A stretch of DNA of 64,000 bases from Mantamonas sphyraenae STR306 (lineage: Eukaryota; Protista; CRuMs). Where the stretch lies: assembly GCA_026936335.1 (NCBI GenBank), contig JAPMXV010000052.1, forward strand, positions 186,001 through 250,000. Reading direction: 5' to 3'. Under the pieces are notes generated by a model, which worked only from the letters and a program-made list of their open reading frames with translations, was not told the DNA's origin and ran no database searches. Every line of letters begins with the position of its first letter. Position 1 is the first letter of the stretch. A program made the translations under genes and the position numbers. Positions 30,306-40,200 of the stretch are shown here, piece by piece.

Positions 30306-30817
30306 CTACTGAGAGGCGGAGGAGGAGAGGAGAAAGTCGTCGGAGCGAAGGGGTGCAATGTCGTCGTTGGTGACCCATTCGTTGGTCTTTGCAATGTCGG
30401 TCTGGATGGCGTCGACCAGGGCTTGGAGCGAGTCAAAGTTGAGCTCGGGACGGATGTAGGCGGCGACAACGACGGAGAGGGTGGAGCCGTAAAAGTCGTC
30501 GTCAAAGGTGTGGATGAGGTGCACCTCGACGGCCTTGTCCTTGTTGTCGTAGAACGGGTTGTAGCCGATGCTCATCACGGCGTTGTACACCTCGTCGTGG
30601 CCCTCGAGAGTGGCAAAGCCCAGGTAGATGCCATTGTCAAGCTTGGCCAGTTGGTCCTGGATGACTTCCACCTGCATGTTGGCCGTGGGGCAGCCCAGCT
30701 CCTTGGCACCACGTCCAAAGCCGCGGATCACCTCGGACTTGAGGTACAGCGGCGTCTCGAGCAGCGTGTACTCCTCCCAGTGGTGGGCTATGGACGTAAG
30801 GGTTTCTGGGTGGACAT
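30306..30817 (-). CDS. RFK: Riboflavin kinase, probably with a 1-nt indel just after the ATG
   Basis: Motifs VIRGFGRGAKELGCPTANM, GIYLGFA, VMSIGYNPFYDNKDKAVEVHLIHTFDDDFYG and YIRPELNFDSLQALVDAI. The nearest ATG (30817) is out of frame by one base in a C-run. Confidence 0.92.
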
Positions 30818-30960
30818 GGGGTGATGATGTGTGGGGGTGGGGTTGGTTTGGGTGGTTGGGTTGGTTGGGGGGGCGTGGGGGGCTGGGATTTGCTGTGCTG
30901 TGCAAGGTCGGCGCCGGCGCTGCGCAAACAAAACAACAACACACAACAACACCATTGACA

Positions 30961-31996
30961 ATGACTCGCTGGGTTATGCTTGTGTTGAGCATGCTGCTGG
31001 TTGGGATGATGTGCCTTGCTCCCGCGGTTGTGGGAGAGGCGGAGGAGACGGAGGAGACGGAGGTGGATTCGCCGCTGTCGTCTGAGGATTCGGACGACGA
31101 GGTGGACGTGGACAGCGAGGACGACAAGGTGGACCTGGAAGACGAAGAGGAGGAAGACGAAGAGGCGGCGGACGATGACTCGGAGGAGGACGAGGACGAG
31201 GAAGAGGAAGAGGACGAGGAAGGGGCGCTGGCAGAGCAGGAACAGGAAGTGGCCGGTTTGTTGGACTTGGCCGACGAGATCGATGACAGCGCAGTGGCGG
31301 ACCAGGAGCAGGACGAGCAGACGGCGCAGATGCGCAAGGAAGTGGCCGAAGCGTAAGTGTGGAGTGTGAGCGAGAGACATGCCGGGAAGCTTCCAGCGGC
31401 AAGGAAGCGGCGACTGGGAGTCGCACGGTGAGCAAATGGAGGGAAAAAAAACGGGGCGCGGCGAAAGAGGCGTGTGTGGTTTTGGAAGGCGCGTGCGTGC
31501 GAGCGAGAAGAATGTGGGGATGGAGACTGACAAGAATGGTTGACAATTGGGTGCGTGCGACGATTGGCGGTGTGTGTGTGTATGTGTGTGGACACATGGA
31601 CTGTGCAGGGTGCGGGACACTGCGGATGCAGCGGCTGCAGCGAAGCTGGCAAAGAAGAAGGCGGCTGGACAGACGGTGGACCTGTCTGCACGCAGCCTGC
31701 ACCGTGCCACGATGGTGTGGGGCATCATCGGCCCCAATGGATGCCCCGAAAAGAGCACAAAGCTGACTCTGATTGCGTCGTGGTACACAAAGGCGCTGCG
31801 AGGCAAAAAGTCGTGCGGCCAGCTCAAGGGCGGCCTGCGCAAGGCGTGCGTGCAGATGGAGGGTGCCTTTTCGCGTGCCAAGCTCCTCTTTGGCAAGTGT
31901 CTGTTCCACTGCGACAACGTCAAGCTCAAGGACGGAGAGGAGGTGGCAGAAGCGGAGACCGAAGGCAAGGCGAGGATGTGCGCATGGTTCAAGTGA
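30961..31996 (+). CDS. Secreted acidic-propiece, Cys-rich protein, family member 1; 2 exons
   Basis: Signal peptide MTRWVMLVLSMLLVGMMCLAPAVVG, a D/E-rich region and a phase-2 intron at 31353-31608. Core sequence GIIGPNGCPEKSTKLTLIASWYTKALRGKKSC..C..AKLLFGKCLFHCDNV..MCAWFK*. Confidence 0.8.
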
Positions 31997-32069
31997 GTGA
32001 GTGAGGGGGAGGGAGAGAGAGGGCGAGCGCGCGGAAGCGGATTGGATTCATCATTTGTTTGCCTTGCTT

Positions 32070-34058
32070 TTAGCCAAGAATGGCCTGACTCTCTTGGTCG
32101 GCGGCGCCCGAGGCGGCAGAGCCGTCGTTGGCAGCGGCAGGTGTGTCGTCGTCGTCGTCTTCGTCGAGCTGGGCGGCAAAGTTGTTGTTGGCGTACTTTT
32201 CACTGGGCCAGAAGCCGTAGGCAAGGATCCAGGTGAACGAGTTGGCCAGCCAGAACATGACCAGAAAGGTGAGGGCGGCGTTGCGGTTGCCGGCCTGGCC
32301 TGTGGCGACGCGGACGACGATTTGGATGAGGCCTGCAATGGCCAGCGTGATGCTGGGCACGCCGAGGAAGATGAAACGGTTCCTCAGCGACGGCTTCATC
32401 TTGATCACAATCATGCACTGCATGACCAGGTAGAAGAACCAGCCGAGGATGACGAGGTAGACCAGCAGGGCCATGGTAAAGACTGAGGGGAGGGGGAGGG
32501 GGGAAAGACGGGGGGAAGGTGTTAGGTGGGGACGGGTTGGGACAGGATGGGACAGGATGGGACAGGTGGGGACAGGTGGGGACAGGTGGGGACAGGATGG
32601 GGACAGGTGGGGACAGGTGGGGACGGGTGGGGACAGGTGGGGACGGGTGGGGACAGGTGGGGACAGGTGCGGACAGGTGGGGACAGGTGCGGACAGGTGG
32701 GGACAGGTGGGGACGGGTGGGGACAGGTGCGGACAGGTGGGGACAGGTGGGGACGGGTCACTCACAGATGATGGCTTCGACGCGGACGGGGCTGAAAAAG
32801 CTGAGGGAAGGGTCGACGGCATAGCCGAGGATGACAGACGAGGTGCCGAGGAGCATGCAGACAAGGTAGAGGCCAACAATGAGCATCTTGTTGCGGTAGA
32901 ACCTGTTGATGGTGACGCGGAGCTCGTCGCGGCGGAGCTGGTCGAGGATGACGAGCCAGAAGAGGAGGAGGACGGCGCCGTAAAAGACCTCGTTCCAGGC
33001 AGAGAGGAGGTGGAGGAACCAGCCGTGGATGACGTAAGTAAAGGGATAGATAGGATCGCAAAGAAGAATGGTGGCAACAATCATGGCACCAAGGGCCTTT
33101 TGATCAAAGTCCCAGGTGGCAATGGGGCCCTCGCGACGCATGCGGATCCAAAAGATGACGCCGAGAGCGAGGTTGAGGAGAAGAAAGGTGATGCGGAAAC
33201 CAAGCACAAAGCTGGCGTAGTCCTCGTTGAAGTAGGCAAACATGCCCTCGACGTCGCCGAGCCAGCTGGTGTCGTTGCCGCCAACATTGAGCATCTGCAG
33301 ATCGACACGGTACTGCGGGTCGGCAATGTACTCCTGAAAGGCAACGGGCACCGTGTTGCAGCGGCTCTGGCCCGCGGGGCAGTCGAGTTCCTGCTCGACG
33401 ACAAACTGGTTGCCCTGCTTCTGAAAGTCGGTGGCGCCCTGCTTGCGGTGGTAGATGGTGGCTTCCATGCGCAGGAACTTTTTGATGGCTGGAACGGTTG
33501 CGGGTGCGTGGGTGCGTGGGATGCGTGTGGGTGGGTGAGTGGGTGAGTGGGTGGACGGGAGGGGGGGGGTCGGGAAATGCGTCGCGCGTGGACGAGCAAA
33601 CGCACTGAAGAAGCCCTGTTCGTCGGCGTACGGAGTCACCAGATAGGCCCAAAAGGTGTTGAGCGGAGACATGGTCGGAGTGGTGGCTTGGAACACAGAG
33701 GTGTTCTGCGGAGGGTGGAGCAATAGGGAGGGCGAGGGGAGGCACGTGTGAGCAGAGGGGAGGTGGACGGGAGGGCAACGAAGCACGGAGTGGGGGGTAA
33801 GGGGGGGGAGGGGATGGACGGGAGGGAAGGGTACACACTACATACAAACTTCATGGCCACGCCGCCGAGGCAGGCGAGGTTGTGGTGTTCAGGCTGGCCG
33901 TTTGCACCCTTGCAGCCGTACGCGTATTGCTTCGAGGTGGCAATGTTCTCGGGCCCCGCAGCACCGATGGCGACAAAGATGACCAGGAAGACGGCATAGA
34001 CAGCAACATAGGCGATGAATTCGCGGGTGGACCAGTCCTCGAGTTTTGGGATCTTCAT
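32070..34058 (-). CDS. TMEM181/Wntless-like multi-pass membrane protein; 4 exons
   Basis: N-terminus KLEDWSTREFIAYVAVYAVFLVIFVAIGAAGP resembles TMEM181. Introns 33845-33706, 33605-33489 and 32765-32483. C-terminus WILAYGFWPS. Confidence 0.7.
32528..32757. repeat. G-rich 10-bp minisatellite (GGGGACAGGT)n in an intron
   Basis: About 23 tandem copies, with GGGGACGGGT and GCGGACAGGT variants. Confidence 0.95.
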
Positions 34059-34184
34059 GTCGGCGGTGGATTGGGTGTGGTGGCGGGATTGGGCGCTGTA
34101 CTGTATTGAGAGGGGGATTGGGGGGTGAAGGCAGGGACCAGGGGATGAAGGGGGATGGGTCGGTTGGTGGAGGGGAGGGATGTG

Positions 34185-34979
34185 TCAGGCAGTGGAGGGT
34201 TCTGCAGCGATCTCCGAGGCAACGCGCTGGCGTTTGGAGGAGGAGTTGGGAGAGTCGCGGTGCGGGTCGACCTCGAGGTCGTCATACTTGCGACGAAGGC
34301 CACGAAGGACGCGGTTGAAGCGGGAGAGACAGTCGCTGCGTTTGCGGTCGAGGTCCTCCGGGGTGGGTTTTGTGATGGGGTTCATGCTGGGGCTGATCTT
34401 GAGCTGGCGGCCAGCAAGGACGGGGTTGGGCAGGTTGCAGGCACTGCGTGCTGCATCGAGAGTGTGAAACTCGAGAAAGACGTAGCGGGTGGGTGCGTGT
34501 GGGTCGCCAGAGAGGCGCACGTAGTTGACGTCGCCACACTGGCGGAAGTAGTCGATGAGGTGGTCTGCGGTGAGGGTGCCCAGCACGTTGCCAATGTATA
34601 CAGTACGCTCCACCTCTTCTCGCTTCTTCTGGATGACCTGTGCGCTCTCTGCAGAGATGACGGGAGCAAGCGCAGGAGCGGGCGGGGAGGTTTGGAGGGT
34701 GGACGGGGTGGACGGGGTGGACGGGGTGGAGGTGGTGGTGGAAGGGGTGGCACGTGCTTCGGGTAGGGCGACAGCGACGGTGCGTTCCATGAGGGAGATG
34801 CCGCTGAGGCCGAGGGCGATTTGCTGCGCGTCTTCCGAGTCAAACACGACACCTCCGTTGCCCTGGCCGTCCACATGGGCGTGGACAACCCCTCCAGCCG
34901 CTTCAAACACAGCTTTGAGGTCGTCTGCCTGCACCTCGGGGGCGAGGTTGGTCACGACGACGGGGAAGGACGTGGACAT
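34185..34979 (-). CDS. Two-RRM RNA-binding protein (SR/SREK1-like)
   Basis: RRM1 VVVTNLAP..GGVVF. RRM2 RTVYIGNV..LIDYFRQCGDVNYVRLSGD..RYVFLEF. Confidence 0.8.
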   Translation of the reverse strand: MSTSFPVVVTNLAPEVQADDLKAVFEAAGGVVHAHVDGQGNGGVVFDSEDAQQIALGLSGISLMERTVAVALPEARATPSTTTSTPSTPSTPSTLQTSPPAPALAPVISAESAQVIQKKREEVERTVYIGNVLGTLTADHLIDYFRQCGDVNYVRLSGDPHAPTRYVFLEFHTLDAARSACNLPNPVLAGRQLKISPSMNPITKPTPEDLDRKRSDCLSRFNRVLRGLRRKYDDLEVDPHRDSPNSSSKRQRVASEIAAEPSTA

Positions 34980-35080
34980 CGGCGGGGGAGGTGGGATTTC
35001 GGTGGGTGGGGTGGTGGAGAAGGGAGAGCGAGGCCATGCCAGGGTTTTCAGGTGGTTGGAAATTCTTTTGCTTTTATGAT

Positions 35081-36109
35081 TTAGAAGCAGCACTTCCACC
35101 AGCTGCACCAGCCCATGTCGCTATCCTCGACGTCGCTGTCGTTGGAATCGGTGTCGCGGACGTCGCTGCACCGATACGTGCAGCTGCCAAAGAGCTTGGC
35201 AGCAAGCTTAAACTCCTTCTCGGCGTTCTGGCACTGGTAGCGGAAGCGGCCCATGACGGTGGCGCAGCTGCTGCGGCCCTTGAGCGCGTTCTTGTAGGTG
35301 GTGGCAATGGCAACGAGCTTGGTGGACTCCTTGGGGCAACCGTTGCTGTTCAGAGCACCGTACTTGTCGTTGCGGTTGCGCACGCGCGGGTGGCCACTGC
35401 GCTTGGTGTACTTCTTGTAGTCGGCGTGGGCCTTGCCGCCGTTGTTCTGGCAGCTGTGGGGGGGGAGGGAGCAAAACGCGGGCCGGAAATCGACGCGTCA
35501 GCACACAGACATGGTCGGTTGGGGATGGCAAGGAGGAGAAAATGCGGCCGCCAGATGCACGGGATCGGTGGCACATGGTACAACGATGGACCATGCCGGC
35601 CCAGGCAGCTGGCGGGGTTTGGAGGCGATGGGAGAGCGGGGAAAAAAAAGTACAATAGCGCCTGAAAAAAATGTGGAGAAGGAGAGCAAACGCTCCCCAA
35701 GAAGTAGAGGCAGAGAGATGGAGGACGGGGCGCGGGTGGGAGGTGTGGGGTGTACTCACCGCTTGACAAAGCGGCGGAAGCGACCGTAGCGGTCGTCGCT
35801 GTCTTCGTCGCTGACGGAGTTTGCCGAATCGGCGAGAACCTGGTTGACTTCTTCCTCGGCCGAGTCGTTCTCGTCGCTCGAGTCGCTGTCGTCCTCGTCG
35901 TTGTCGTTGTTGTCATCGCTGGACTCGCTGTCGTTCTCCTCCTCGTCGTCCTCGTCGCTCGAGTTGTTCGAGTTGACGAGGGCATCGGCAACCACCTCGG
36001 CCTCTGCGGAAGCCTCGGCGTCCTCGCTGCTGCTGACGTCGCTTTCTGCGACGGCAAGCACCGTGATCATGCCAAGGAGGATGAGCAAGAGAAATGCAAA
36101 CTTGGTCAT
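35081..36109 (-). CDS. Secreted acidic-propiece, Cys-rich protein, family member 2; 2 exons
   Basis: Signal peptide MTKFAFLLLILLGMITVLAVA, an acidic propiece, RFRRFVKR and a phase-2 intron at 35759-35454. Core sequence CQNNGGKA..YGALNSNGCPKESTKLVAIA..LFGSCTYRCSDV..DMGWCSWWKCCF*. Confidence 0.85.
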
Positions 36110-36161
36110 TTGGGGGGGATGCGTGTTTTTGTGTTTGTCCACACGGAGCAGAGCAGACGAT

Positions 36162-37169
36162 CTAGAAACAGCACTTCCACCAGCTGCACCAGCCCATGTC
36201 CTGGTTGGTGTCGGTGTCTCCAACCTGGGTGCCTGCGGTCAGGCCGTCGCGGACGTTGGTGTCGCGGACGTCGCTGCAACGGTACTGGCAGCCGCCAAAC
36301 AGACGGCGTGCGAGCAGATAGGCGCCGTAGGCCTTGTAGCACGCCCAGCGGGAACGGCCCCATATGTGGTAGCAGGCAGACTTGCCGGCCAGCGCGGTTT
36401 TGTACGCACGAGCAATTGCCGTCAGCTTTGCGTTGGTTTTGGGGCATCCGTTGTTGTTGAGATCGCCGTACGTTTCACTGGTTTGGGTCTTGCGGAACCA
36501 GCCCCTGCGGGTGGTCTTGACCTTGGCGTGCTTCTTGTAGTCCTTGGCTGCGTGGCCTCCCGCATTCTTGCAGCTGTGGGGGGAGGGAGGGGAAGGGAGG
36601 GGAAGGGAGGGGAAGGGAGATTATTGAGTGAGTGGGGGAGGCGGGGGGCGGGGAGAAGGGAGGAGGGGCGGGGGAAGGTGGGGGGAAGGGGGCGGGGTGT
36701 CGCCAACTCTGGATGAGCAGAGAGGAGAAAGAAAGGGGGGGGGTGGGAGGGGATGCGGAAAGCTGGGAACGCACGCTTTTTTCAGGGACTTGTCGGTGCG
36801 GCGGAAGAGACGTGTGATGACATTGCCACCTCGGCGACGGCGACGGCGACGGCCCCACAGGTCGGTGTTGTTGTCGGCATCGGAAACCTCGTCGGCAGAC
36901 TCGCCAATGTCGAGGAGCTCTGCGATGTCTTCGTAGCGAGCCACATCGCTGTCGTCAACAGCCGAGGCGACGGCGTTGTACTCGCTGTCAGAAGAGTCGT
37001 CGGAGGAGTCGGCATCGGCAGCCTCCTCGGTGTCCTTCTCGTCGTTGTCGTTGTCGGAGGAGACTTGGGGCTCGGCGGCCTCAGCGGGCTTGACGTCGCT
37101 TTCTGCGACAGCAAGCACGGCAGAGAGACCCAGCAGGATGAGAACAGTGATGGTGAGCTTGGTGTTCAT
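36162..37169 (-). CDS. Secreted acidic-propiece, Cys-rich protein, family member 3; 2 exons (exon 2 is not in the ORF track)
   Basis: Signal peptide MNTKLTITVLILLGLSAVLAVA, an acidic propiece, WGRRRRRRR and a phase-2 intron at 36774-36574. Core sequence CKNAGGHA..YGDLNNNGCPKTNAKLTAIA..LFGGCQYRCSDV..DMGWCSWWKCCF*. Confidence 0.85.
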
Positions 37170-37271
37170 CGTGGTGAAAGGGGGGGGAAAGATGATCAGC
37201 GTTGTGTTGGGTACGCCGGCGGAGGGAGAGCCACGAAAAACCAACTGCTCGCCCATCCAACTCGAGCAAGC

Positions 37272-40200
37272 ATGGGCAACAGCGGAAGTTCGATCGATCC
37301 TGCGCAACAGAGCCTGTTGGACGCGATTGCGAGACATGATCTGAAACGGATGAAGGCGGCGGTGGAAGAGGGGGCGAGCGTGAAAACGGAAGTCGCCGGA
37401 CGGTCTGCGCTGGGCCAATGCATCATCCAGAACTTTGAAGAGGGTGTGGCATACTGCCTGGAGTGCGGAGCTCAGGTGACACTCGGTGTCATCACCACCA
37501 TCTTTGCGGTGGACAACAAGGCGGCGTTGGAACGGTTTCTTCCGAAGCTGGAAGCGAGAAAAGACGCGCAGGACGCATTGCTCCTCGCCGCAGCGCAGCG
37601 GAACGCAGCCTCGTGCATCCGCCACTTGGTGGCGTGTGGCCACGACGTAAACAAGGAGGTGGAGCTTTACGGCACTGTTCTGGGGGCCGCTGTGATTGGA
37701 GGGAACCCGCGTGCGACACGGGCCCTGCTGGCCGCCGGTGCAGAGCTGAAGGGCCCTTCGTACCAATCACTGCTGGCTGCAGCGGCGAGCAATGGAGAGC
37801 CACGCACGCTGCAGTGCATCCTGGACGCTGGGGTCGACGTGGACGAGGTGTGTGCGAGCGGAGAGACGGCCCTGCACAAGGCAGTTCGCCAAGGCAATGG
37901 ACCGGCTGTGGTGCTGCTGCTGCGTGCTGGAGCCCTGTGCAACGTGGCCGACAACCAAGGGTTCTATGCGTTGAACCGGAGCGAGGAGGCGATCTGCAGC
38001 GTGCCGCTGATCCAGCGCGGGGCCTCGTACAGCGGGTCGATTGTGGCCAAGGTGGAAGCACACAGGGAGCTGCTGCAGGGAGTCAATCTGGTTGCGCACG
38101 TGGGCTCGTACGGTGTGCCTGACTTTGGGTACACGGTTCCGTCGGGGTCGCCGTGGACGGTGGACGTGGCGCTGCAGATTGCGGTGCTGATCCAGAGGCG
38201 GATTTTGACGGGGGGACGCGTTGTGACGCCGACTGGGTTGGATGTGGAGATTGGAATGGCAGGTGCGGGCCAGGGCAGCCTGCCGGGGTGTACGCGTGAC
38301 GCAGTGGTGGTTGCGGCGATCCAGAATGTGTATGCGGGGACATCGCACGACTTTTTGGCGCTGGTGGCAGAAAGCCAGGAGGAAGAAGAGGAGGAGGAGG
38401 AGGAGGAGGTGAAGGATTTGGTTCGTGCAGCAGAGCTGGGCGAGCCGAGGCGCATGCTGCGGCTGATTCGCCAGGGGGCCGACGTGGACGCCAAGGACCG
38501 GGTTGGCAACTCTGCGTTGCATCGTGCGTGCGCACGGAACAACGGAGCGGCGGTTGCGGTGCTGCTCAAGGCAGGAGCGAATCCGCACGTGAGAGACAGC
38601 GTGGGGTGGACGGCGTTGCACAAGGCAGAGAGCAACAGATGCATTGTGCCACTGATGCAGGTGGGTGTGTCTGCGACGACGACGACAAAGACAGAGGAGC
38701 TGGAGCAGCTGATGCAGTCGTGGGATCTGGCCAGGCACATTCGGAAGTACGGAGATCCGCAGCTGGGGTGGACGGTGCCGGCAACGGCGCCGTGGGAGTT
38801 GGATGTAGCGCTGCAGATTGTGGACATGGTGCGGGAGGGCGTGCTGACGGGCGGGCACATCCGAACGCCGACGGGGTTGGACGTGGAGATTTCAGAGGAG
38901 GGAGCTGCGATGGAGCTGCCGGAGGATGCGCGGGATGCGCTGTGTGTGGGGGCGGTGAAGGAAAAGTTTGGCAAGGGAGAGTTGGATGTGGAGGCACTGG
39001 TGGTGCTGGCGAGGGAGCAGGAGGAGAACGGGACGGCTGCGGGGCGTGCAGTGAATCTGTCGGCACCGGTGTTGGCAGACGTTGTGAAGGACGGAGAGAT
39101 TGTGGTTCCAGACAAGGTGCGGTTTGAGACGTTGAAGGGACTGGTGCTACTGGACGCGGCGGGGGAGCTGGCCGAGTGTCTGGGACGGTGGGAGGGTGAC
39201 ACGGTGGAGATCCTGGGCATGGCAACGATGTGCGGCTCGTACAAGTGCATTGAGGTGCTGTTGGAGGCCGGTGTGGATCCGCAAACGGCCGTGATCAAGG
39301 CGGCAGCGTGTGGAAAGCGCAAGGCGGTGGAAATGCTGGTGGAGGCCGGGGCGACGCTGGATGGCAACGAAATCGGAAAGACACCGTTGCACTACGCTGC
39401 GTCGAATGGAGAGCCTCGTGCAGTGGGCGCGCTGATTGCCATGGGGATGAACGTCAACGCAAAGGATCGTGGCGATTCGACCCCGCTGCACGAAGCGTGC
39501 CGAAAGGACAACGGGCCTGCCGTGGTCGCTTTGCTCAAGGCTGGTGCCGATCCGAACGTGGCCGACATGCACGGGCGTCTGCCGCTGAACGGAGTCAAAG
39601 GGAACAACAGGTGCATTGTGCCGCTGATGCAGGCGGGGTCGCGGGTGTCGGGCCAGCCTCACACAGAGGTGAAGGAGCAGCTGATGCAGTCGTGGGATCT
39701 GGCAAGACATATCAAGAGGTATGGGGATGCGGAGCTGGGGTGGACGGTGCCCGTGATGGCGCCGTGGGAGTTGGATGTGGCGCTGCAGATTGTGGACATG
39801 GTGCAGGAGGGCGTGTTGACGGGCGGACACATCCGAACGCCGACGGGGTTGGATGTGGAGATTTCCGAGGAGGGAGCTGCGATGGAGCTGCCGGAGGATG
39901 CGCGGGATGCGCTGTGTGTGGGGGCGGTGAAGGAAAAGTTTGGCAAGGGAGAGCTGGATGTGGAGGCGCTGGTGGTGCTGGCGATGGAGCAGGAGGAGAA
40001 CGGGACGGCGGCGGCGCGTGTTCCAGTGCGGCACGAGGAAGTGAAGGAGGATGGTGGTGGTGGCGGCGATGAAGAGGGCGGAGGCGGGGAAAAGGGAAAG
40101 CGCGGGTGGCTGCACAAGATGGATGCCATCTCGTTGAACAAGGGGTGGAAGAAGAGGTGGTTTGTGTTGCAGGATGGCGTGGTGTCTTACTACAAGCACG

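Follow-up and report, generated by a model that had tools for sequence, protein, structure and literature searches.

Three two-exon genes of Mantamonas sphyraenae, here called A, B and C, encode members of a family of small, modular proteins that matches no known family or fold and that is restricted to Mantamonas among the sequences sampled. We put at about one half the probability that these are secretory-pathway-targeted proteins from which a convertase releases a product that acts outside the cytoplasm. The genes were read from the sequence of the window, by which we mean the whole stretch of 64,000 nucleotides of contig C52 that was analyzed. Mantamonas, a tiny marine flagellate, belongs to the CRuMs, which branch near the base of Amorphea and have received little study; to our knowledge, its feeding, gliding and communication are almost entirely undescribed.

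The first exon of gene A (30961-31352, forward strand) encodes a signal peptide (approximately 30961-31035) followed by a stretch of 105 amino acids rich in Asp and Glu, with a net charge of −54. A phase-2 intron of 256 nt (31353-31608, GTAAGT..CAG) leads to exon 2 (31609-31996), which encodes an Ala/Lys-rich basic segment, a core domain with five Cys and a shortened tail, MCAWFK, before the stop codon. Genes B and C lie on the reverse strand. Exon 1 of B (36109-35760) specifies a 21-residue signal peptide, an 84-residue acidic stretch with a net charge of −36 and the basic cluster RFRRFVK(R); across a phase-2 intron of 306 nt (35759-35454, GTGAGT..CAG), exon 2 (35453-35081) specifies a basic core with six Cys and a pI of about 9.9, an acidic linker and, ahead of the stop codon, the tail DMGWCSWWKCCF, which contains three Cys (35084-35119). 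In gene C, exon 1 (37169-36775) encodes a 22-residue signal peptide, an acidic stretch with a net charge of −27 and a basic cluster with a run of seven Arg, the phase-2 intron spans 201 nt (36774-36574, GTGCGT..CAG), and exon 2 (36573-36162) encodes a basic core, again with six Cys, a linker and the tail DMGWCSWWKCCF (36165-36200) directly before the stop codon. The stop codon of C is separated from the ATG of B by 52 nt. All three introns are of the GT..AG type, in phase 2, and fall between the acidic or basic part and the core; this splitting into exons hides the genes from a plain list of open reading frames, as the sequence-only reading had remarked. The splice junction of B and C is supported by P0005, an mRNA-derived sequence of Mantamonas plastica, because it runs collinearly through that junction: it aligns with exon 2 of both genes from the first residue, and its residues upstream of this alignment, RWRFRWRKA, match the end of exon 1.

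The features from which the trio had originally been recognized, namely a signal peptide, an acidic propiece, a phase-2 intron, basic clusters and a shared core, are all present in the sequence. The core pattern is common to A, B and C, with invariant columns that include G, NGCP, KL, IA, Y, AL, G, C, C, A, LFG, C, C and V, and exon 2 contains 6, 9 and 9 Cys, respectively. Exon charges fit the same description, with a pI of 4.05-4.29 for exon 1 (net charge −53 in A, −31 in B and −14 in C) and of 9.2-9.7 for exon 2 (+12, +9 and +15), and the basic clusters RFRRFVKR, RRRRRRR and KKK are found in the trio. BLASTP comparison of B with C (8e-44) and of A with B (1e-20) indicates a likeness far beyond chance.

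The proposal of a three-gene family proved to be an undercount. The M. sphyraenae genome contains at least 12 family genes: four on C52, three in tandem on C54, three on C22 and one each on C28 and C35. Common to all 12 are a signal peptide, an acidic stretch, a helical domain, an acidic linker and a Trp/Cys tail, and most members also have a basic cluster rich in Arg and aromatic residues. The helical domain, of about 70-100 amino acids and mostly basic, contains the invariant C-P...C-x-[YF]-x-C; the short linker closes with D-x-G, and the tail is typically GGSGWWCCFGWC, with ends such as CCF and CCFGWC. Further matches to the tail pattern on C6, C26, C54 (at 298k), C76 and C77 are due to chance and have neither the core nor the stop-codon context. 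When the trio was aligned with the canonical members by hhalign, a probability of 95.7% and an E-value of 1.1e-8 were obtained; B and C display all five family features (signal peptide, acidic stretch, C-P...C-x-[YF]-x-C core, D-x-G linker end and Trp/Cys tail), while A deviates in its shortened tail and in the replacement of Y by F. Two generalizations from the trio hold for A, B and C and not for the family at large. The intron occupies an equivalent position in these three genes and lies elsewhere in other members, just past the signal peptide or within the core, and member D is intronless; likewise, the core is cationic in the trio, where exon 2 is basic, and is neutral or acidic in members E2 and I.

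A profile search of 1.84 billion representative proteins yielded five matches, all from M. plastica. Every one is a Trinity transcript from a culture transcriptome and displays the same full layout; at least five members are thus expressed in that species. Outside Mantamonas, the claim that the family is undescribed withstood every search made, all of them, like the structure predictions, run exon by exon rather than on the joined, spliced proteins. Pfam gave sub-threshold noise for every exon and for the 17 members, a sequence profile search of the PDB gave a single match at chance level (E 0.39), and the ESM Atlas gave no usable match. A word-indexed search with the core and tail of member E1 found no match, and with a 16-sequence profile it retrieved, among the 8000 candidates sharing most words, only two, both of them the profile's own M. 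plastica sequences. Scanning JGI metagenomes with the pattern [SG]GWWCCF produced 598 pattern matches and no relatives, the intronless member D had no exact match on record, and nothing relevant was found in the literature searched on the tail motif or on the Mantamonas secretome.

Fold prediction, which had also been recommended, was carried out with AF2 from shallow alignments of 11-17 sequences. The resulting models are of moderate confidence (pLDDT 83-95 in the core and about 60-80 in the tail) and match no known fold: for two models, Foldseek searches of the PDB reached a best E-value of about 3 and wide VIA-align searches best Z-scores of 3.4 and 4.4, with nothing above generic helical hairpins. 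The predicted core has three helices, and in the models the tail forms a strand that pairs with a strand at C-x-[YF]-x-C. The combination of an extra Cys in the helix with an extra Cys in the tail is confined to A, B, C, D and P0005, which would fit a link between tail and core. In conservation and hydrophobicity the tail surpasses the rest of the protein, and between B and C it has the lowest dN/dS, 0.31, versus 0.57 for the core. Two modifications of the tail were discarded on inspection of the sequences: prenylation at CaaX or Rab CC motifs, since the tail is luminal, behind a signal peptide, and has no CaaX box, and a GPI anchor, whose signal would require a longer tail.

All 12 N-termini have the appearance of textbook signal peptides, with small residues at −3 and −1 and an acidic start thereafter, and the proteins are accordingly predicted to enter the secretory pathway. 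A multibasic site marks the putative boundary between propiece and product in B, whose exon 1 ends in FVK(R), in C, with its seven Arg, and in H and P0004, which contain poly-Arg; it is weak in A, which has KKK only, and E1, F and I have no clean site. The genome encodes an enzyme of the furin/kexin type (L047:94-2391), with a Peptidase_S8 domain (3.9e-44) and a P-domain (2.1e-28), which makes cleavage by such a convertase plausible. The anionic piece, the multibasic site and the basic, disulfide-type domain bear out the prepro-protein layout that had been proposed.

In the reading we prefer, the precursor would enter the ER by way of its cleavable signal peptide, and the acidic stretch would hold the basic domain soluble and masked until a kexin/furin-type convertase cut the multibasic cluster. 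The domain would be stapled by about three disulfides. Once it is freed, the Trp/Cys tail would fold back and dock on the C-x-[YF]-x-C hairpin, leaving a hydrophobic, thiol-bearing patch exposed, and the domain would be active outside the cytoplasm, whether in food vacuoles, in secretory granules or in the medium, where its likeliest targets would be membranes or surfaces, for example those of prey bacteria. Cleavage, docking of the tail and effector activity are the steps that we infer. An antimicrobial, toxin or pheromone role, as suggested in the sequence-only reading, may be proposed for the family by analogy only.

The analogy is closest with the precursors of the defensin, promelittin and conotoxin type, which resemble A, B, C and most other members in the order of signal peptide, anionic propiece, basic site and cationic, Cys-containing product. 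The trio conforms to the defensin-type prepropeptide layout (a pI passing from 4.05-4.29 to 9.2-9.7, with 6, 9 and 9 Cys) as proteins that would work like such precursors and are not members of their families: no relation in sequence or fold to these precursors was found, and no curated family of defensin-type or other antimicrobial peptides or toxins was matched in Pfam or, at a profile E-value of 0.39, in the PDB. The product also differs in size, a helical domain of 95-135 amino acids as opposed to a peptide of 10-40, and in contrast to the defensin-type precursors the Mantamonas proteins have an acidic charge much greater than the basic charge and carry, in addition, the acidic linker and the conserved Trp/Cys tail. 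Amoebapores and naegleriapores, the saposin-like pore formers of bacterivorous amoebae, are likewise small, helical domains with about three disulfides that phagotrophic protists make by way of the secretory pathway, but their Cys spacing differs from C-P..C..C-x-[YF]-x-C. No exon or member matched Pfam SapB_1 or SapB_2 at E <= 1, and no saposin chain was among the structural matches listed for the moderate-confidence models.

The charge and the Cys content of these proteins lend themselves to a different explanation. In A and B, the ratio of acidic to basic charge is 2-4, and the acidic piece thus far exceeds what neutralization would need. Downstream of the signal peptide, most members have 9 Cys and others 7 or 11, so that nearly every count is odd; the only even one is that of A, with 6. 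An odd count is no worse a fit to covalent oligomers or a matrix than to a soluble effector. The proteins could then be structural or packaging components rather than effectors, either acidic, Ca2+-binding and granin-like or part of a coat or mucilage, in which unpaired Cys would cross-link the molecules, as dimers or as a matrix, inside secretory granules, on the surface of the cell or along its gliding trail, and the basic domain and Trp/Cys tail would serve as a module for assembly or membrane attachment. We regard this as possible, though rather unlikely. It would agree with the very long acidic stretches that outweigh the basic charge, the poly-Ser tract of D and the KKSS repeats of G1, the many paralogues, and the assembly of at least five M. 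plastica members from a culture transcriptome. Against it, the proteins are small (240-320 amino acids), there are no repeats or long low-complexity scaffolds outside the acidic piece, and the poly-Arg sites resemble cleavage sites. Granins (chromogranin, secretogranin) share the signal peptide, the very acidic sequence, the multibasic sites and a small disulfide module; however, no homology or likeness to granins, or to any wall or coat protein already described, was found, and the Mantamonas proteins are much shorter, with a folded basic domain and the Trp/Cys tail.

It is improbable that the family comprises secreted signaling ligands, that is, pheromones or factors of cell-cell recognition in which specificity would come from the variable core, with the conserved tail used in maturation or in docking to a receptor. 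The prepro layout with a small, disulfide-stapled helical domain is that of the Euplotes pheromones, and the paralogues diverge quickly, with dN/dS values of 0.5-1.0 in parts. The linker and tail of G1 also resemble the basidiomycete pheromone precursors (PF08015), in which an acidic region is likewise followed by a short Gly/Trp/Cys C-terminus, but G1 is the only one of the 17 members to match this family, and it does so at 17.8 bits, under the gathering cut-off of 22 bits. The fungal precursors lack a signal peptide and mature in the cytosol, and their hallmark, a C-terminal CaaX box without a signal peptide, was seen in no Mantamonas member: all have signal peptides, and none has a CaaX box, unlike the fungal lipopeptide pheromones. 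Twelve dispersed paralogues are, moreover, unlike a mating-type locus, and the M. plastica members come from a culture transcriptome. Highly improbable is the notion that the near-invariant Trp/Cys tail marks the proteins for lipid modification in the lumen of the ER, or for a carrier devoted to them, with the family as cargo of the Wntless-like membrane protein encoded between A and B. A WLS-like gene (PF06664, E 1.4e-23) does lie there, at 32070-34058, and the tail has the conservation and hydrophobicity described above. However, five of the six family loci have no WLS-like gene as a neighbor, no family gene lies within about 8 kb of the two further WLS-like genes, the AF2 models show the tail resting on the core rather than free, and we know of no acylation motif for such a tail.

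A family of at least 12 genes, without a known fold or detected relatives and with a strikingly conserved Trp/Cys tail, offers a well-defined entry to the secreted proteins of Mantamonas. Because lineage-specific families of secreted, Cys-rich proteins are common in protist genomes, and the function put forward here is a candidate one, we consider the finding moderate rather than exceptional. A processed domain that proved to be membrane-active would represent a new structural class of antimicrobial effector in protists, with a design of polyanion and polyarginine like that of activatable cell-penetrating peptides made by engineering. Should the proteins instead belong to a matrix or to packaging, they would provide a marker of a secretory compartment new for the lineage. 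Were they the cargo of a Wntless-like protein, a hydrophobic ligand with a dedicated carrier, in the style of Wnt and Wntless, would exist in a deep-branching, non-animal eukaryote.

The three two-exon genes of the window, A, B, and C, were read across positions 30700-37400, and every exon was translated separately. Gene A lies on the plus strand, with exons at 30961-31352 and 31609-31996 and an intron at 31353-31608 (donor GTAAGT). Genes B and C lie on the minus strand, B with exons at 36109-35760 and 35453-35081 and an intron at 35759-35454 (donor GTGAGT), C with exons at 37169-36775 and 36573-36162 and an intron at 36774-36574 (donor GTGCGT). All three introns have a CAG acceptor and are in phase 2, and the models proposed by the sequence-only reading were borne out. 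The exon 1 products are hydrophobic at the N-terminus, where B and C have Ala at −3 and −1 followed by ESDV, and continue through a D/E/S-rich stretch of net charge −54 (A), −36 (B), or −27 (C) to a basic cluster; the signal-type start, acidic propiece, and basic cluster described earlier were thereby found in all three genes. The exon 2 products have a pI of 9.2-9.7, and their computed composition returned the 6 (A), 9 (B), and 9 (C) Cys residues first counted. The common core pattern is seen in the three-way alignment, with BLASTP values of 8e-44 (B vs C) and 1e-20 (A vs B).

Searches and folds of A, B, and C were run on single exons. The mRNA-derived P0005, a family member in the Mantamonas plastica transcriptome, aligns with exon 2 of B and C from the exon's first residue (P0005 residue 182), and the preceding residues, RWRFRWRKA, match the exon 1 ends FRRFVK(R) and SLKK(A). 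This alignment in a sister species is indirect evidence for the modeled junction between the acidic/basic part and the core in B and C.

The original count of three genes proved an underestimate. The genome searched comprises 25,061,354 bases in 78 contigs; the window occupies C52:186001-250000, and its GC content is 57-65%. For the published M. sphyraenae assembly the figures are 25.06 Mb, 78 contigs, and 59% GC (PMC10492846). Whole-genome searches with the core profile, one newly found member, and the back-translated tail revealed a family of at least 12 genes, adding the intronless D (contig C52, ~7 kb past the window end), the tandem trio E0-E2 (C54), F, G0, and G1 (C22), H (C28), and I (C35). 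Five further tail-pattern matches in the genome were judged to be chance. Comparison of the window trio with the canonical members gave an hhalign probability of 95.7% (E 1.1e-8). Every member has a signal-peptide-like start, in some on a short separate first exon, followed by an acidic stretch, core, acidic linker, and Trp/Cys tail, while the Arg/aromatic cluster is present in most. In family alignments A2, A3, and A5, C-P and C-x-[YF]-x-C are invariant, an Ala is nearly so, and D-x-G precedes the tail, W-W-C-C-F-x-x-C. A, B, and C have their intron upstream of the core, E0-E2 have it just past the signal peptide, F and G1 have it within the core, and H is interrupted at both of these last two places, so that the intron at an equivalent position, correctly noted for A, B, and C, defines only the window trio and does not extend to the rest of the family. 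In D (L004:1342-2094 (-); G000:C52:256975-257727), a 16-Ser run replaces much of the D/E stretch, and the tail has diverged to SCPWWLPKGW, followed by five extra residues. Tandem family genes are tightly packed, with just 52 nt (window 36110-36161) between the C stop and the B ATG and 75-160 nt between genes in the C54 trio, and neighbors may share transcription.

Between A and B sits a gene with several exons that encodes a Wntless-like transmembrane protein (32070-34058, minus strand; PF06664, E 1.4e-23 and 1.5e-8 for two exons). The genome contains three Wntless-like genes; none adjoins any of the remaining five family loci, and no family member occurs within ~8 kb of the other two. The adjacency is probably due to chance, and there is a low probability that it is meaningful. 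An intron of this gene holds a G-rich minisatellite of ~10-bp units (GGGGACAGGT-like; 32500-32760). An intronless gene for a two-RRM protein (34185-34979, minus strand; PF00076, 3.3e-15) lies between it and B. On C54, E0-E2 are flanked upstream by a putative leucine-rich-repeat gene (L007:2295-4307) and just downstream by a gene identified by eye as a putative rhomboid-type membrane protein (L007:7222-8391 (-)).

No exon or member scored above threshold in Pfam, and a word-indexed search with E1 gave no match. Since the claim of novelty depends on the absence of relatives, an exhaustive profile search of 1.84 billion representatives was run, yielding five matches (E 3e-18 to 1e-5), all of them M. 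plastica Trinity transcripts from EukProt. The layout is complete in all five proteins, whose tails include GGGGWWCCWGWC and NWWCCFGGCN. No other eukaryote was found at E 0.001 in this search; EukProt presumably includes other CRuMs. A tail-pattern scan of JGI metagenomes found no relative. That A-C belong to a real protein family entering the secretory pathway, confined to Mantamonas among sampled sequences, is well supported, and the earlier suggestion that the family is undescribed stands.

AF2 models were built for B exon 2 (11-sequence alignment; mean pLDDT 73.8, core 83-92) and for the E1 core plus tail (17-sequence alignment; mean pLDDT 74.9, core up to 95). Both predict three main helices and, at C-x-[YF]-x-C, a short strand; the acidic linker is predicted to be disordered, and the tail to form a strand that pairs with the C-x-[YF]-x-C strand before a short helix. 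The best Foldseek hit of the two models against the PDB had E ~3, and in VIA-align, run over 48,161 chains, the top Z scores were 3.4 and 4.4, generic for helical proteins; by these comparisons, the cores match no known structural protein family, a possibility raised at the outset. The family is an undescribed one with a prepro-like layout and no known fold detected.

Two additional Cys mark subfamily 1 (A, B, C, D, and P0005), one close to where the last long helix begins and one in the tail (GWC, GSC, RMC, WLC); members outside it lack both. This co-occurrence fits a tail-core disulfide, in agreement with the docking predicted by AF2. B/C dN/dS is lowest in the tail (0.31), 0.57 in the core, and ~1.0 in the initial 32 residues of exon 2; with synonymous sites almost saturated, these figures are rough. 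A poly-Arg run with aromatic flanks often forms the boundary cluster (C, H, P0004, also from M. plastica, and P0005), and the genome encodes a Peptidase_S8 plus P-domain convertase (L047:94-2391; G000:C45:304314-306611). This kexin/furin-type enzyme has a C-terminal SH3 domain, seemingly an unusual combination. Processing at the basic cluster and tail docking can reasonably be inferred.

Three possible functions were ranked. Second comes a cross-linked structural or packaging role, mainly on the excess acidity and on the Cys count downstream of the signal peptide, which is odd in nearly all members (9 in most, 7 or 11 in others; even, at 6, only in A); the odd count suggests a free thiol or intermolecular bond. 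A pheromone role ranks third: its sole pointer is a sub-threshold PF08015 match in one member (17.8 vs 22 bits), and, unlike fungal pheromone precursors, family members have signal peptides and lack a CaaX box. Ranked highest is a domain acting on membranes or surfaces. The cores are mainly basic (pI 9-10; exceptions E2 and I), and strong partitioning of a GWWCCFGWC tail into membrane interfaces would be expected from the Wimley-White interfacial scale. Once processed, the basic, disulfide-stapled domain may act on membranes or surfaces, for example those of the prey bacteria of this bacterivore.
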